Sequence record: NC_023688.1
DNA: 64,000 bases
Direction: 5' to 3' (one strand)
The notes beneath the pieces are model-generated. The model worked only from the letters and a program-made list of their open reading frames with translations. It ran no database searches and was not told the DNA's origin. Below are positions 7,619 through 39,784 of this stretch, one piece after another (position 1 is the first letter of the stretch; every line of letters starts with the position of its first letter). A program made the translations under genes and the position numbers.

Positions 7619-8593
7619 TCACAGCAGATTACTCCTGTCACCATAGTTTACTTCTTCAACGTACATTTCGTAAAGGAAATTATCCCAGAACTCGGTATCC
7701 ACTTTTTCACGCATACCGTTTTTCTTGGCGATAACAATCTCTTTCTCGACGTCATTCATGAGCTGTTCGAGATACGGGTTAACTTCATCGACAAGACTAC
7801 GCTTTCCTAGCTTGATGTCAAGGATAAATTCGCGATGTTTCAGTGGGAATTTCAGATCACCAGTTCGATAGATCTCAAGCAGTTGCTCACCTCCGCGCAC
7901 GGCATGAGACAGTGCTTTCCAGTCAACACCGACCTCTTCTTTGGCTTTCTTAGCACGATCACCGTATTCTTCCCAGATCTTTGTGATCTGATGCTCAAAT
8001 TCAGTAAACTTGATGCCATAAAGATACTTGCGACCCAACACTTCATAGAATTGAACAACTTCACCGGTTCGACTAATTTCAGCACCCGGGAACGTGAATT
8101 CATCGGTAGGCAGTCGTCCAACGAAGCTGGACAGACGGTAGCCACGTTCGTCTTGTGGTACTGCTTTGACTACTGCCATAACTCGTTCCAGAGCGGCCAA
8201 TCGCGTACCTTTCACACCGTACTTTGTTGCTTGTTTGCGACAGTAACCCAAGAAAGCGTCCATCTTGGTAGTGTAGAACATCGAGCGTTTTTGATGAATG
8301 TAATCCCAATATTTCGTGGTTTCGATCAGTTGATTACTATGCAACATATCAATGCACATAGTTTCGCCTTTGCTTGCGAGTCGCAAGAACTGACGCAAGG
8401 ACATCATTTCGGTATCGATATCATCAACGGTATTTTTACCTTTACCGCCAGTCGATTCGTTGTAGACCTCACGTCCACCAAGAATGATTTCGCGAGCAGT
8501 AGGGATAAAGATCCCTTTATAATCTCGGTCGGATGTTGGCGTACTCAGCCCATACAAATGCGAGCCGAACACGGTTTTCATTAGAGTTTTCAT
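7619..8593 (-). CDS. DNA polymerase beta-superfamily nucleotidyltransferase (RlaP-like)
   Basis: FGSHLYGLSTPTSDRDYKGIF is the GS..(Y)G..DxD signature; C-terminal WKALSHAVR...G.L helices. Confidence 0.8.
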   Translation of the reverse strand: MKTLMKTVFGSHLYGLSTPTSDRDYKGIFIPTAREIILGGREVYNESTGGKGKNTVDDIDTEMMSLRQFLRLASKGETMCIDMLHSNQLIETTKYWDYIHQKRSMFYTTKMDAFLGYCRKQATKYGVKGTRLAALERVMAVVKAVPQDERGYRLSSFVGRLPTDEFTFPGAEISRTGEVVQFYEVLGRKYLYGIKFTEFEHQITKIWEEYGDRAKKAKEEVGVDWKALSHAVRGGEQLLEIYRTGDLKFPLKHREFILDIKLGKRSLVDEVNPYLEQLMNDVEKEIVIAKKNGMREKVDTEFWDNFLYEMYVEEVNYGDRSNLL

Positions 8594-21773: not shown

Positions 21774-21893
21774 TGGCGGGGAAGACGGGACTCGAACCCG
21801 CGACCAATAGTTTAATTTGCGTTGGCTTGCTGTAAAGAATCTTCTCAGATTCCGCTTTTTGCGTCTACTGCTCTACCACTGAGCTACTTCCCC
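21774..21893 (-). ncRNA. tRNA-like RNA 1: acceptor, D and T arms, CCA end; anticodon arm replaced by hairpin + UUUACAGCAA module
   Basis: GGGGAAG/CTTCCCC-G-CCA; GCTC AGTGGTA GAGC; GCGGG TTCGAGT CCCGT; insert GAATCT-GAGA-AGATTC-TTTACAGCAA. Confidence 0.75.
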
Positions 21894-24368: not shown

Positions 24369-25811
24369 TTAGAAATCAATACCGACGTATCGGTCGCTCA
24401 TGATCTTGTCAAGCATGATTTGCATCGGGTTAAACTCTTTTGCACTCAGGATTGTCTCCATGATTGCAGGACTAAAACCAGATACCAACGCAGTGCCTTG
24501 ATCGTCTTTGGTCACCGGATTGTTAGTCGGGCGCGGGCAAAGATTCCAGAACACAAGTTTCGGCATTTCGTAACCAGCATCGCGGTAAGTCTGACGAATC
24601 ACCTCAAAGTTGGTACGTTCGCGGTCACGCATACGATAGTATCCGCTATAACCGCCGTCTGCAACGTTGAATTCCATGTCAGACAATACAACCATCATAG
24701 ACGGCATATCAGACTGCGGAACTCGATGTTTCACGGCACGATCAAGAATGATCTTGAATGCACCAGCGAAGTTGGTAGAACCACCCCACGGAGCGCGTCC
24801 CAGATGATTCACCATGCTTTGCAGATCGTCGCCTTTCGCTTTGATGTTGTAGAACTGAGGATTATCATCGAAGGTAATCACTTCGTTCTTGAACACACCA
24901 CCAGAGCGTTCACCGATATACAGACCCAGAGAGATCGCGATATCCATAGCAGACAGACCAGCGACGGCAGTCGGGGTGCTCATAGAGCCAGAAACGTCAA
25001 CCATTGCGATTACGTTTTCAGTAGAGCCAGCCATCCAGTCGCGTTGTGCTTTCCATTGTGCATCAGCAGCAACAGAAGAACCGGTACGCAATGATTTGAT
25101 CATGTCATACGGGTACACAGCACCAGCGTTGATCTTAGCTTCGCCCTTTTTCAGAGACTCAAGATAAGCAACATAACGCTCATTCGCATTTTTCAGGAAT
25201 GCTTTCTGATATCGGGCAGATGCAACAGACGGCAGTTTACCGAAATCAATTCCATCCCACTGACGAGCACACATTTTTTGTTCAACGGTGTTCGACATAC
25301 GGACGATTGTCTGACGATACTCTTTAGCAGTCATACGCATAGCTTTGGCCAGAATACCAGCTTCTTTGCCTTTGCGAGGAGCCCACTTAGCAGCAAGACC
25401 GTTCTGTTTGATCAGAATCGCGTCCACCATGATAGCGACCGCAGCATCTTCGATTGGAGTACCAATCATTGAAACAACGTCCTTATAACGACCGATTTCC
25501 GGTGTGTTCATCAGAACGACGGTAGCGTCAACTTGATGGCGATGTGCCAGCAGTTTCAGCAGACGAATGAACTGTTCACGCTCACCAGCACCACCGCGAA
25601 TATCGCGAGCCCATTGCAGAATACGAACTGCCCAATCCGGAGATTCGGTGTAAGCTTCCACAAACATGGAACTCAGATCTTTACCGCGAGCGGAACCGAT
25701 TTGAGAAAACAGATTCAGACACTTATCACCAGTGGTATAGTTAGTAACTGCACCGTTCGCGGTACGTGCCAGTGCTTGCGCTTGAGTCATTGCATTCATA
25801 AAATTAGACAA
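24369..25811 (-). CDS. DUF2828-type protein (TROVE/Ro60-like helical domain + vWA)
   Basis: RTANGAVT...LNLF, WARDIRGGAGERE, AAKWAPR and LPSVA motifs; MIDAS VDVSGSM and VLSDMEF; TTG start with GAGG site. Confidence 0.85.
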   Translation of the reverse strand: MSNFMNAMTQAQALARTANGAVTNYTTGDKCLNLFSQIGSARGKDLSSMFVEAYTESPDWAVRILQWARDIRGGAGEREQFIRLLKLLAHRHQVDATVVLMNTPEIGRYKDVVSMIGTPIEDAAVAIMVDAILIKQNGLAAKWAPRKGKEAGILAKAMRMTAKEYRQTIVRMSNTVEQKMCARQWDGIDFGKLPSVASARYQKAFLKNANERYVAYLESLKKGEAKINAGAVYPYDMIKSLRTGSSVAADAQWKAQRDWMAGSTENVIAMVDVSGSMSTPTAVAGLSAMDIAISLGLYIGERSGGVFKNEVITFDDNPQFYNIKAKGDDLQSMVNHLGRAPWGGSTNFAGAFKIILDRAVKHRVPQSDMPSMMVVLSDMEFNVADGGYSGYYRMRDRERTNFEVIRQTYRDAGYEMPKLVFWNLCPRPTNNPVTKDDQGTALVSGFSPAIMETILSAKEFNPMQIMLDKIMSDRYVGIDF

Positions 25812-29331: not shown

Positions 29332-29928
29332 TATTATTTATTAGATCTCTTCGGCAGCGTCTGCCACCATTTCTGCTAACTTCTCTTCGTTGTCACTAAC
29401 AATCAAACAACGAGCTTCGTTGATCTCACGGCGATATGGATCCAAATCACCATAGCAGTATTCAGCACCACTTTTCATGATGTCGCGAATTTCATCCGCA
29501 CAATCTTCCAGATAATCTTCGTCCACGATATCTTTTCTGGCGAGAAATGCCACGATTTGCCAGCGTTGATGAACAACTTTCTTTTTGTAGCCTTCAATCA
29601 TCAGAATCATGTTCGTATTTCCAGTTTGCTTTGTGCAAAGCCTTGTGCATTTTAAAGTTGAAATCGTCTTTCTGTCTAGCCAGTTCTCGATTGAATGCGA
29701 ACTCACTAGCACAGGCAATCAACATCTTTTTGTCTTCTACCGCGTTAAACGGAGATTGTGCAACAAAGACAACTTTGTTTTGTTGATGCATTTCGTTGAT
29801 ATAACGACAAACCCGCTCGCCGTTGTCAAACAGTCGAGATAGATAGAGTCGTTGAAACTGAGATAATCGGACTTTCTTGTCCTTGTCAACGTCGATATAA
29901 TGCATAGCATCACCTCAAATGAATTTAG

Positions 29929-30692
29929 TGGCCCCGGTGGGAATCGAACCCACAACGAGCGGTTATTCTTTTAAGAACTCGATTATGGATTTTCCATTCT
30001 CCAATTCTTTAATTTGTGAACTTTTAAGGACGATAAGGTTTTTAACGGACTTCCACTTACAACGATCTCGTTCACGCTCATAACCTTTAACCTCTATGTA
30101 AAGATCCATAGACGGTAGATAAAAGTCCGGAAAATATAGATGTTCTCCGTTTTCCCAGCTATAAACGAAAGGAGTAATCTCGTTAGTGTATTCTATGTTA
30201 GCAGAACTTAGGCATTTTGCAACCAATAGTTCCCATTTCCCTTTAAATGTTTGTCCTTCAAACGCATACATCTTAACGCGACCAGATACGTTGTTTTGCT
30301 GTAAGAATCTGGGTTGTTTTTAACAACTTCCTTCATGACTTTCGAAAATTTAATTCTTTGTTCGTCCGTCCAAATGGTCTCATTCATACTCTTTGCGGCA
30401 TCGGATAACTTTTTCTAGTCTCTTCCGAAATGACAGGTTTATCCAAACCAAGTCTGGTCGCTTTTGTGTATTGGTTTGTGCCTTTACATCCGAGTTTCGA
30501 TGGAACGTGAAACTTTATTTTATTTTGGATTTTTGGAACAACGAACTTCGTGTTGTCTAAGTGAATTTTGTATTCTTACAGATTTTGTCGCAGTATGCGC
30601 AGTTCATTAGATTATCTCCTAGATTGTGTTATATCACTATTTATCTAAGAGATTGTGTGAGCCGCTTGCTTGAACCCTCTAGCTACGGGGCC
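29929..30692 (-). tRNA. tRNA-Ile2-like (CAU), split in the anticodon by a 692-nt insert
   Basis: 5' half 30692-30658 GGCCCCGTAGCTAGAGGGTTCAAGCAAGCGGCTCA joined to 3' half 29965-29929 TAACCGCTCGTTGTGGGTTCGATTCCCACCGGGGCCA gives a canonical cloverleaf. The GGCCCC acceptor resembles Ile2. Confidence 0.8.
29963..30606 (-). mobile_element. Homing endonuclease-like gene (Zn finger + NUMOD3-like + PD-(D/E)xK), frameshifted in its 5' half
   Basis: Intact C-terminal ORF 30271-29963 with PDFYLP...IEVKG. The upstream part reads MNCAYCDKICK..SLRQHEVRC...SEETRKKLSDAAK...YSKNNVSGRVK once four single-A indels are corrected. Confidence 0.75.
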
Positions 30693-32346: not shown

Positions 32347-32423
32347 TGGTGCATCGGACTGGACTTGAACCAGTGACCAGCGGATTTTCAATCCGCCACT
32401 CTACCATACTGAGTTACCGATGC
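32347..32423 (-). tRNA. tRNA-Phe(GAA)
   Basis: GCGGA TT GAA AA TCCGC, CCA. Confidence 0.95.
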
Positions 32424-32430
32424 AAAATTT

Positions 32431-32507
32431 TGGGGTGGCGGACGGGCTTCGAACCCGTGACTATCAGGATCACAACCTGAAGTTCTACCAAACTGAACTA
32501 CCGCCAC
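32431..32507 (-). tRNA. tRNA-His(GUG)
   Basis: TCAGG TT GTG AT CCTGA, C73-CCA. Confidence 0.95.
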
Positions 32508-32774: not shown

Positions 32775-32799
32775 ATTATTCTTTATTTAGTACGCTAAG

Positions 32800-32873
32800 A
32801 AGCGAGTACCTGATTCGAACAGGTGATCTCTGGGATATGAGCCCAGCGAGGACGGCCTCTCCTCCAACTCGCA
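32800..32873 (-). tRNA. Initiator-type tRNA-fMet(CAU)
   Basis: CTGGG CT CAT AT CCCAG (three G-C pairs); unpaired 1:72; no CCA. Confidence 0.85.
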
Positions 32874-33502: not shown

Positions 33503-33577
33503 TGGTGGTGCATAGTAGATTTGAACTACTGACCGACGGCGTATGAAACCGCAGCTCTACCACTGAGCTAATGCACC
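33503..33577 (-). tRNA. tRNA-Met(CAU), elongator type
   Basis: GCGGT TT CAT AC GCCGT, CCA. Confidence 0.88.
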
Positions 33578-33769: not shown

Positions 33770-33845
33770 TGGTCCGCCGTGGTGGGTATGATCCACCAAC
33801 CTATCGGTTAAAAGCCGATTGCTCTACCAGTTGAGCTAACGGCGG
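33770..33845 (-). tRNA. tRNA-Lys(UUU) with atypical T loop
   Basis: ATCGG CT TTT AA CCGAT; T loop ATCATAC; CCA. Confidence 0.9.
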
Positions 33846-33853
33846 TTTGTTCT

Positions 33854-33924
33854 CAGGGGCGGTAGGAGTCGAACCCACCTCAACGGATTTGGAATCCGCC
33901 GCATAACCGATTTGCTACGCCCCT
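33854..33924 (-). tRNA. tRNA-Trp(CCA)
   Basis: GCGGA TT CCA AA TCCGT; no encoded CCA end. Confidence 0.9.
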
Positions 33925-39161: not shown

Positions 39162-39261
39162 TCGAGGCGACTGGATTCGAACCAGCGACCGAGTGCTTCT
39201 TATGTGCTCTCGTAAAAGTTCATAAGAAGGCACTTGCTCTATCCGTCTGAGCTACGCCCCG
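39162..39261 (-). tRNA. tRNA-Arg(UCU) with a 26-nt insert between positions 36 and 37
   Basis: AGTGC CT TCT [TATGAACTTTTACGAGAGCACATAAG] AA GCACT; acceptor, D and T arms canonical. Confidence 0.82.
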
Positions 39262-39286: not shown

Positions 39287-39784
39287 TCAAGGACTCCAGT
39301 CAAAATTTAAATCTTCTGTATACTCTTCAAGTATACGCAAGTTGTAATCGATTGTAAACGACTTTGGCAAAACAAAATCAGGGCCAACATCATAACTAGC
39401 GGTAATGTGTGGATGATAATCAGGATAATCATGAGTTGCCCCATGTTTCTCTCTGATCTCTTTGTGTCTAGCGCCAAACCAAGGGTCTGTGAGCTTTAGC
39501 ACAAGAGCACGTTTGCCGCTTTGTGTTTCGAAGATATCAGGAATCATGACACCTTGCAACGTTTTTTCCATAGTACCATACGCTTTGAAATCAGGCAAGT
39601 ATTTTCTGGAGTAAACCAACGTGGTGTGCATCTTATCATAGGGTACCAGATTAGGGATACCCATTTCGCGACATCTTCTAACAATAGCCATAGCAGTGCG
39701 AGGCTTGTAACGAACTGCTACATAAGTGCCTCGCGTTTCTTTTTGCTCCGTCGTCTCAGTGAATTCTGAAAACGACAGCATCAT
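39287..39784 (-). CDS. 57B: gp57B / Acb1-like 2H phosphoesterase
   Basis: Two HxT motifs (MHTTLVYSR, HPHITASY) and ATHDYPDY; synteny with 57A and 1. Confidence 0.9.
   Translation of the reverse strand: MMLSFSEFTETTEQKETRGTYVAVRYKPRTAMAIVRRCREMGIPNLVPYDKMHTTLVYSRKYLPDFKAYGTMEKTLQGVMIPDIFETQSGKRALVLKLTDPWFGARHKEIREKHGATHDYPDYHPHITASYDVGPDFVLPKSFTIDYNLRILEEYTEDLNFDWSP

Follow-up and report, generated by a model that had tools for sequence, protein, structure and literature searches.

A nuclease cassette without a detectable ribozyme in the anticodon of a tRNA-Ile2(CAU) gene of Aeromonas phage PX29

How does a nuclease gene come to lie inside the anticodon of a tRNA gene, and what becomes of the tRNA? 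The question is raised by a 64,000-nucleotide (nt) stretch of sequence record NC_023688.1 (hereafter the window), which we identified as Aeromonas phage PX29, a T4-like phage of the genus Angelvirus (100% identity over the 2-kb stretch compared; GenBank coordinates equal window positions plus 62,000). On the minus strand of the window, a gene for tRNA-Ile2 with the anticodon CAU is interrupted by a 692-nt endonuclease cassette. We consider it probable, at roughly 0.75, that an intron-less homing cassette, itself now decaying, inactivated a dispensable phage tRNA-Ile2 gene.

The split gene and its uninterrupted counterparts

The 5′ half of the gene (nt 1-35; positions 30658 to 30692, minus strand, 35 nt) reads GGCCCCGTAGCTAGAGGGTTCAAGCAAGCGGCTCA and comprises the acceptor 5′ strand, a 3-bp D arm, the 5′ strand of the anticodon stem, and C32-U33-C34-A35. 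The insert, at 29966 to 30657 on the minus strand, consists of a leader and a degenerate open reading frame (ORF). The 3′ half (nt 36-73; 29929 to 29965, minus strand, 37 nt) reads TAACCGCTCGTTGTGGGTTCGATTCCCACCGGGGCCA, starts with U36-A37-A38, and continues through the 3′ strand of the anticodon stem, the variable loop, the T arm, the acceptor 3′ strand, and the discriminator A. When folded, the joined halves formed a clean 72-nt cloverleaf with the anticodon CAU. The original prediction for this locus, made without database searches, had thus correctly described two intact halves that join into a canonical cloverleaf, and its coordinates for the 692-nt insert were exact. The CA|U junction that it gave is one of two choices: the insertion point is ambiguous by one base, and C34|A35 is allowed equally with A35|U36.

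Default ARAGORN, which lists 23 tRNAs in the window, missed the split gene, and its intron mode found the gene in place. The parse that ARAGORN proposed (Val-CAC, with the insert at 37/38) was rejected, as were other offsets, because the uninterrupted alleles described below read CUCAUAA. Two further CAU genes lie in the window: an initiator-like gene at 32799 to 32873 (1-72 unpaired, GGG/CCC anticodon stem) and an elongator-Met-like gene at 33503 to 33577. Since the split gene carries a GGCCCC acceptor stem and the other two are of these types, it is the only Ile2-type gene in the window, in agreement with the earlier claim. The joined sequence is distinct from the Met and fMet genes and syntenic with a gene of phage Aeh1 annotated as “Ile-tRNA if modified.” In tRNA-Ile2, C34 is converted to lysidine and the tRNA is charged with Ile, for which the two halves would have to be contiguous.

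Uninterrupted tRNA-Ile2 alleles, for which a comparison of related phages had been suggested, were found in Aeh1, avDM12-TAAL, Ah1, and phiWae14, where they are collinear and have the same neighbors (mobD.6 and the gp315 homolog). The PX29 halves were identical to the Aeh1 gene at 30 of 35 bases (5′ half) and 35 of 37 bases (3′ half), and, given this match between the same flanking genes, they are not chance resemblances. An insert of 691-692 nt was present at the identical point in four independent Angelvirus assemblies (PX29, AsFcp_1, AsFcp_2, and AsFcp_4). Because these are all four of the sequenced Angelvirus genomes, the feature is not a misassembly, an outcome that the original prediction had named as fatal to it.

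The exons themselves show some changes. The 3′ half in PX29 is followed by CTA (29926 to 29928, minus strand), while all uninterrupted Aeromonas-phage alleles encode CCA. This C75T change is found in PX29, AsFcp_2, and AsFcp_4, and AsFcp_1 carries C72A, which breaks the G1-C72 pair; both positions are invariant in all uninterrupted alleles. It is possible, judging from these substitutions, that constraint on the split tRNA has been relaxed. Divergence of the halves was rejected as a test of constraint, since the PX29 and AsFcp_1 flanks are ~99% identical and the comparison is powerless. Next to the split gene, a ~216-nt ORF that follows the tRNA in Aeh1, Ah1, avDM12, and phiWae14 is cleanly deleted in PX29 (29906 to 29928, compared with positions 2280-2516 of our sequence L003 and with L006), and AsFcp_1 has about 210 extra nt at the point of this deletion.

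The cassette and its relatives

The nuclease ORF is intact in AsFcp_1, where it encodes 212 amino acids (aa) and its TGA stop lies 7 nt ahead of the tRNA’s UAA. The AsFcp_2 and AsFcp_4 copies are broken by a TAA codon in frame and by a frameshift within a run of A residues. PX29 has this frameshift in common with them and bears three more 1-nt indels, leaving fragments of 16, 59, and 102 codons, all on the minus strand. The first fragment (30557 to 30607) runs from ATG through 16 codons (MNCAYCDKICKNTKFT, the start of a CxxC zinc finger) to TAG and contains a +1 A insertion relative to AsFcp_2 and AsFcp_4. The A-run AGAAAAAGT at 30408 to 30416 is the site of the common frameshift relative to the intact AsFcp_1 frame. 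The second fragment, in another frame, spans 30208 to 30387 (59 aa, beginning MNETIWTDEQRIKFSKVMKEVVKNNPDSYSK), and the C-terminal fragment spans 29963 to 30271 (102 aa) and holds the PD-(D/E)xK core, with its stop codon TAA at 29965-29963 doubling as U36-A37-A38 of the tRNA, as had been noted originally. The catalytic motif PDFYLPSMDLYIEVKG (PD...ExK) lies at 30083 to 30130, and the upstream catalytic Glu is in WELLVAK (30235-30215). Thus the PX29 copy keeps its catalytic motif even though a stop and frameshifts break it, and the PX29 endonuclease gene is a pseudogene. A Zn-finger/NUMOD3-like/PD-(D/E)xK gene had been predicted here; those domain calls hold for the family, but not as a working gene in PX29, where a stop follows after 16 codons and 1-nt indels lie in A-runs.

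The C-terminal fragment matched phrog_15137 (E 6e-26), and its match to Phage_endo_I (E 2e-4) fell under the Pfam cut-off. The full-length protein also matched phrog_15137, annotated “endonuclease” (E 1e-40), which is the best-named family for it; its Pfam matches to Phage_endo_I (PF05367; 16.6-22 bits, against a gathering threshold of 29.1) and DUF7487 were under the cut-offs. A profile of 45 family members aligned with T7 endonuclease I (1m0d) at E 2.7e-4, with the E, PD, and ExK positions in register, and the catalytic E, D, E, and K are invariant in 45/45 members. On these profile comparisons, the nuclease is a distant relative and not a member as defined by Pfam. An AlphaFold model (predicted local distance difference test score, 87.5) had the catalytic domain of the homing endonuclease I-Bth0305I (3r3p), which is of the PD-(D/E)xK type, as its best Foldseek match in the PDB (probability 1.0). 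C2H2-finger models matched 16 of the 45 members, and NUMOD3 matched 10. Full-text literature searches found no description of this nuclease family or of an endonuclease-split phage tRNA.

The leader of the PX29 cassette carries the late-type promoter-like sequence and the AGGAG site that had been reported for it: a late-promoter-like box GATAAATA at 30645-30638, AGGAG at 30620-30616, and the ATG at 30607. The AGGAG ribosome-binding site (RBS) is buried in an 11-bp hairpin (-13 kcal/mol, minus strand) in which the 5′ arm ATCTCTTAGAT (30643 to 30653) pairs with the Shine-Dalgarno region in the 3′ arm ATCTAGGAGAT (30614 to 30624). The closing pair is A-T in PX29 and G-C in AsFcp_1, a compensatory change. 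The box runs from the last bases of the 5′ arm into the beginning of the loop; the AsFcp_1 box is the canonical T4 late promoter TATAAATA. At least seven of the eight bases of TATAAATA are matched in 23 of 51 distinct family leaders (60-nt leader), where about 1.4 would be expected. The hairpin would probably keep read-through early transcripts untranslated. Given the overlap of the box with the end of the 5′ arm, a late transcript would lack most of that arm, and its RBS would be free. T4 is known to regulate genes by such an arrangement of hairpin and late promoter.

By tblastn, homologs of the nuclease were detected in 89 phage records from many hosts. All five annotated contexts that were examined lay in a tRNA region, and four of the five adjoined a tRNA(CAU) gene. 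In Acinetobacter phage AM101, an Ile2-like tRNA is interrupted at the same place in the anticodon by 666 nt that encode an intact homolog (51% identical), whose stop codon is likewise U36-A37-A38. This insert is present in seven Lazarusvirus records (AM101 and six others), and many relatives with ~99% identical flanks have an intact tRNA, a presence/absence pattern that, as read from the sequences, is the classic signature of an active homing element. Between PX29 and AsFcp_1, identity is 97-100% in the flanks but only 71-80% in the inserts, so distinct cassette alleles have entered or been exchanged at one site. No tRNA is annotated at the split site in the PX29, AM101, or AC4 records; phage tRNA annotation misses such split genes. 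In the Acinetobacter phages (L011, at 1333-1407, and its Lazarusvirus relatives), the split tRNA is directly preceded by a suppressor-type tRNA with the anticodon CUA, annotated as tRNA-Pyl/TERM.

A survey of IMG/VR, covering the best 80 of 260 loci, yielded 64 distinct homologs, most of which have an orphan tRNA 5′ half upstream that ends in ...ACTC (C34) and is often 5′-truncated. A common plan follows this orphan half: a 25-50-nt leader with a hairpin, a late-promoter-like box, and an RBS; the nuclease ORF; and a complete tRNA(CAU) gene overlapping the end of the ORF. In 14 cases the stop codon TAG is apparently U8-A9-G10 of the cassette-borne tRNA. The phage PhaxI offers a direct comparison. 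At least 80% of its cassette region is covered in 7 of 264 matching Kuttervirus records, and LPEK22, a nuclease-free phage with an empty site, has an Ile2-like tRNA of which PhaxI retains only the first 27 and the last ~7 nt. The space between these remnants is taken up in PhaxI by the leader and the nuclease gene, by another complete tRNA(CAU) that differs from the resident one, and by a further ~60 nt. The comparison of PhaxI with LPEK22, together with the orphan-half plan, indicates that the usual cassette ruins the tRNA gene it enters and supplies another in its stead. True splits, without a substitute tRNA, are seen in PX29, AM101, and one more locus, L053.

Some of the cassette-borne RNAs are unusual in themselves. 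In the IMG/VR loci L017, L020, L021, L022, L023, L027, and L040, a tRNA(CAU)-like RNA of about 77 nt over the ORF end (e.g., L022 978-1054) has a rearranged core, in which the anticodon arm is enclosed by a 3-bp D-like helix and followed by the D-loop-like AATYGGTYA; the Rfam tRNA score is only 31.8 bits. Across these seven sequences, 19/19 pairs are 100% paired, 16 of them with changes on both sides. We know of no description of this tRNA topology. In the IMG/VR loci L035, L078, L081, L082, and L085, the last endonuclease codons AAGGATGYTTTGT are complementary to the post-tRNA trailer ACAAARCATCYTT, which extends the acceptor stem by ~11 bp and may form a processing site.

Fate of the interrupted tRNA

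The course of events that we favor begins with a cassette copied by double-strand-break repair into the anticodon (at C34|A35 or A35|U36) of an auxiliary tRNA-Ile2(CAU) gene. The nuclease would cut the intact anticodon region of tRNA(CAU) genes, and occupation of the site would protect against further cutting. The split gene would be non-functional, a loss that may be tolerated because the host would supply tRNA-Ile2; the bacterium has a tRNA-Ile2 gene of its own, and under laboratory conditions T4-type phages can do without their tRNA genes. Decay of the PX29 nuclease gene by stop and frameshifts would then reflect a lack of uncut targets among the Angelvirus phages. That the usual cassette destroys its target tRNA and brings a substitute is, in our view, the strongest indirect evidence against repair of the insertion at the RNA level. 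One of two readings in the original prediction, an intronless homing element that killed the tRNA, is therefore the one supported, by the absence of a ribozyme, the unpaired insert ends, the domains of the family, the presence/absence pattern, and the replacement tRNAs.

Several observations weigh against inactivation. In each of PX29, AM101, AC4, and L053, joining the halves still yields a perfect cloverleaf, and the split gene is the only Ile2-like tRNA of PX29. The exon haplotype of AC4, marked by two compensatory pairs in the T stem, occurs in no sampled uninterrupted allele. We dropped these T-stem changes as proof of selection after insertion, since they are clustered and a co-converted patch explains the haplotype equally well. 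With the insert in 4/4 sequenced Angelvirus genomes, there is no member of the genus with an intact copy of the tRNA. PX29 is annotated with rnlA (RNA ligase 1), pseT (polynucleotide kinase), and a CCA-adding enzyme (tRNA nucleotidyltransferase). Finally, conserved and structured inserts occur in the anticodon loops of two further tRNA-like genes of the window (described below), so PX29-type phages may process such inserts.

In a rival reading, the tRNA is spliced by proteins alone: an endoribonuclease of host or phage would cut on both sides of the insert, the acceptor and anticodon stems would hold the halves together, and phage Pnk/Rnl1 or host RtcB would seal them into a functional tRNA-Ile2. 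T4 Rnl1 and Pnk reseal anticodon-loop breaks, and such splicing would fit a precise insertion whose halves are intact in several lineages, the three annotated repair and processing genes, the 26-28-nt hairpin insert with RNase III geometry in a tRNA-Arg(UCU)-like gene that is uninterrupted in phiAS5, and the conserved anticodon-loop insert of a 117-nt tRNA-like gene. The Ile2 insert itself speaks otherwise. Its ends form no helix, and in duplex folding of PX29, AsFcp_1, AM101, and L053 they paired no better than dinucleotide shuffles (z -1.3 to +1.2); no bulge-helix-bulge was found there, and the insert sits at 34/35 or 35/36 rather than 37/38. No motif is common to the junctions of these four sequences. 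No EndA-like gene or other candidate for the excising endonuclease was found in the parts of the PX29 annotation examined, which lie outside record positions 140-172 kb. The product of 57B (39287-39784, minus strand), annotated “RNA ligase,” was rejected as a splicing enzyme, as it is Acb1, a phosphodiesterase directed against the cyclic oligonucleotide-based antiphage signaling system (anti-CBASS; Pfam E 9e-36). The replacement tRNA carried by most family members would be needless if inserts were spliced, and both C75T in the PX29 lineage and C72A in AsFcp_1 also argue against a tRNA in use. We therefore regard protein-only splicing as unlikely.

Another reading is a cryptic self-splicing intron that overlaps the endonuclease frame and belongs to group I or group II or relies on two small self-cleaving ribozymes. 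It has precedent in the bacterial group I introns that occupy the anticodon loops of tRNA-Ile(CAU), tRNA-fMet, tRNA-Leu(UAA), and tRNA-Arg(CCU), one of which encodes the PD-(D/E)xK enzyme I-Ssp6803I. References on such introns are among those listed in PMC3984707. In Rfam scans at E<=1, however, the PX29 insert and four homologous inserts yielded tRNAs only and no ribozyme, the group I core (P3-P9; Intron_gpI) included, and the non-coding part of the PX29 insert amounts to only about 50 nt, which upholds the earlier contention that there is no room for group I or II structure. In group I introns, the base ahead of the 5′ splice site is U and the intron ends in G. At any PX29 junction compatible with CAU, the base ahead of the site is C34 or A35 and the insert ends in A; in AM101 the 5′ exon can be read as ending in U36, in which case the last insert base is T. 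Group II features (domains I-VI, GUGYG...AY ends, and usually a reverse-transcriptase ORF) are lacking as well: there is no Rfam match, the insert begins (A)CACAA, and the ORF encodes a PD-(D/E)xK nuclease. Between PX29 and AsFcp_1, the 71-80% identity of the inserts follows a coding-type pattern. Such an intron is very improbable indeed. The halves could instead have been kept for the cassette or the phage and not for translation, as handles for RNase P or 3′ processing, stabilizers of the endonuclease mRNA, homology arms in cassette exchange, or decoys for host defenses that target tRNAs. Consistent with this, what many relatives keep of the orphan 5′ half is its 3′ portion (GGTTAGAGCA-N5-ACTCC), the 5′ portion being lost, the CTCC of the orphan half pairs with the GGAG of the RBS, and PX29 and AsFcp_1 have different endonuclease alleles between near-identical halves; the masking hairpin of PX29, in contrast, is built wholly from insert sequence. 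We think a role of this kind doubtful for PX29, and it is compatible with, not exclusive of, an intron-less cassette that inactivated the tRNA. As to an assembly or sequencing artefact, the indels private to PX29 lie in homopolymer A-runs and could partly be sequencing errors, but the same architecture recurs in the four Angelvirus genomes, each sequenced independently, and in seven records of Acinetobacter phages, and one frameshift is common to three assemblies, which reduces that chance to almost nothing.

The two other tRNA-like genes with anticodon-loop inserts merit description in their own right. Directly following 57B on the minus strand, the tRNA-Arg(UCU)-like gene (39162-39261; Rfam tRNA 52 bits) has a 26-nt insert after U36 and was missed by default ARAGORN, which found no other tRNA-Arg in the window. 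Inserts of 26-28 nt lie at the same point in Aeh1, Ah1, AsFcp_4, and phiWae14, and phiAS5 has a plain CUUCUAA loop. The anticodon stem is prolonged by a helix of 8-12 bp that compensatory changes maintain, and across this helix the junctions face each other with a 2-nt 3′ stagger, the geometry of an RNase III product. The acceptor stem is lengthened by an inverted repeat, ACACATTG...CAATGTGT, which is invariant. Databases annotate this gene as “tRNA-Lys” or “tRNA-Glu” with an intron. In the 117-nt gene (21777-21893, minus strand; Rfam tRNA 54 bits), labeled in RefSeq as tRNA-Leu with an intron, a ~47-nt structured insert replaces the normal anticodon loop; Aeh1 and phiAS5 have this insert too, and its internal hairpin shows a compensatory change (GGAATCT/AGATTCT vs. 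GGATTCT/AGAATCT).

Elsewhere in the window, a 476-aa “RNA-binding protein” (24369-25799, minus strand) was considered as RtcB and rejected, as its domains are DUF2828/DUF7788/VWA. A gene for an RlaP-family “RNA repair pathway” nucleotidyltransferase lies at 7619-8593 (minus strand), and weak YrlA-like Rfam matches overlap adjacent tRNAs at 32374-32480 and 33800-33911.

Place among known mobile elements

The original prediction had compared the cassette with SegB and mobE, and both are apt as analogies even though the nuclease family differs. Like the free-standing T4-type homing endonucleases SegB, which lies in the T4 tRNA cluster, and SegF and SegG, which are examples of intronless homing, the cassette is a selfish nuclease gene with late expression signals, sporadic among related phages and placed in a tRNA region; those genes are inherited by break repair together with flanking markers, as the cassette would be. 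As Seg genes lie beside their targets, so most members of the present family adjoin a (presumably resistant) tRNA allele. The Seg enzymes are of the GIY-YIG type, in contrast to the Zn-finger/NUMOD3/PD-(D/E)xK architecture found here, and the PX29 and AM101 genes lie inside the target anticodon and not beside it. The mobE gene in Aeh1 nrdA is, in the same phage group, another free-standing endonuclease gene within a gene that has neither intron nor intein. It encodes an HNH enzyme, and the split NrdA polypeptides reassemble into an active enzyme, whereas tRNA halves with an open anticodon loop cannot decode unless they are ligated.

Among enzymes with the same catalytic motif, I-Ssp6803I of the cyanobacterial tRNA-fMet(CAU) is a PD-(D/E)xK nuclease whose gene and target are both in the anticodon loop of a CAU tRNA, as would be the case here for the putative target. 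Its self-splicing group I intron keeps the tRNA functional, unlike the ribozyme-free PX29 insert, and PDB searches returned no sequence match to it. The nuclease core resembles that of T7 endonuclease I, with which its E, PD, and ExK residues align, and its best fold match is I-Bth0305I; T7 endonuclease I is, however, a junction resolvase without a finger or NUMOD3, and I-Bth0305I is an intron-encoded enzyme of the EDxHD family. Elements that carry a replacement for the piece of target that they disrupt are known: an endonuclease ORF in Allomyces mitochondria brings a foreign atp6 3′ end, and phage attP sites restore tRNA 3′ ends. PhaxI, Kuja, and many IMG/VR loci do likewise in leaving an orphan tRNA fragment and bringing a complete tRNA(CAU). 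Their replacement differs in being a whole tRNA gene that overlaps the nuclease stop, and PX29 and AM101 have no substitute at all.

If the halves were joined after all, bacteria would for the first time have been seen to splice a tRNA without a ribozyme; taken with the insert of the tRNA-Arg(UCU)-like gene, it would point to a bacterial protein-only tRNA splicing pathway exploited by a homing endonuclease. The near identity of AM101-type Acinetobacter phages, which have the insert, and DP45-type phages, which lack it, makes the pair well suited to crosses. The prevailing view is that homing endonucleases persist in essential or useful genes only inside introns or inteins, and otherwise beside their target. 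The present family occurs in nature in several states: beside a tRNA(CAU) gene, in place of a resident tRNA with a carried one supplied, and naked in the anticodon, as in PX29 and AM101. These states make up a natural series on how a target is invaded and how the cost of invasion is met, and they bear on the origin of mobile introns.

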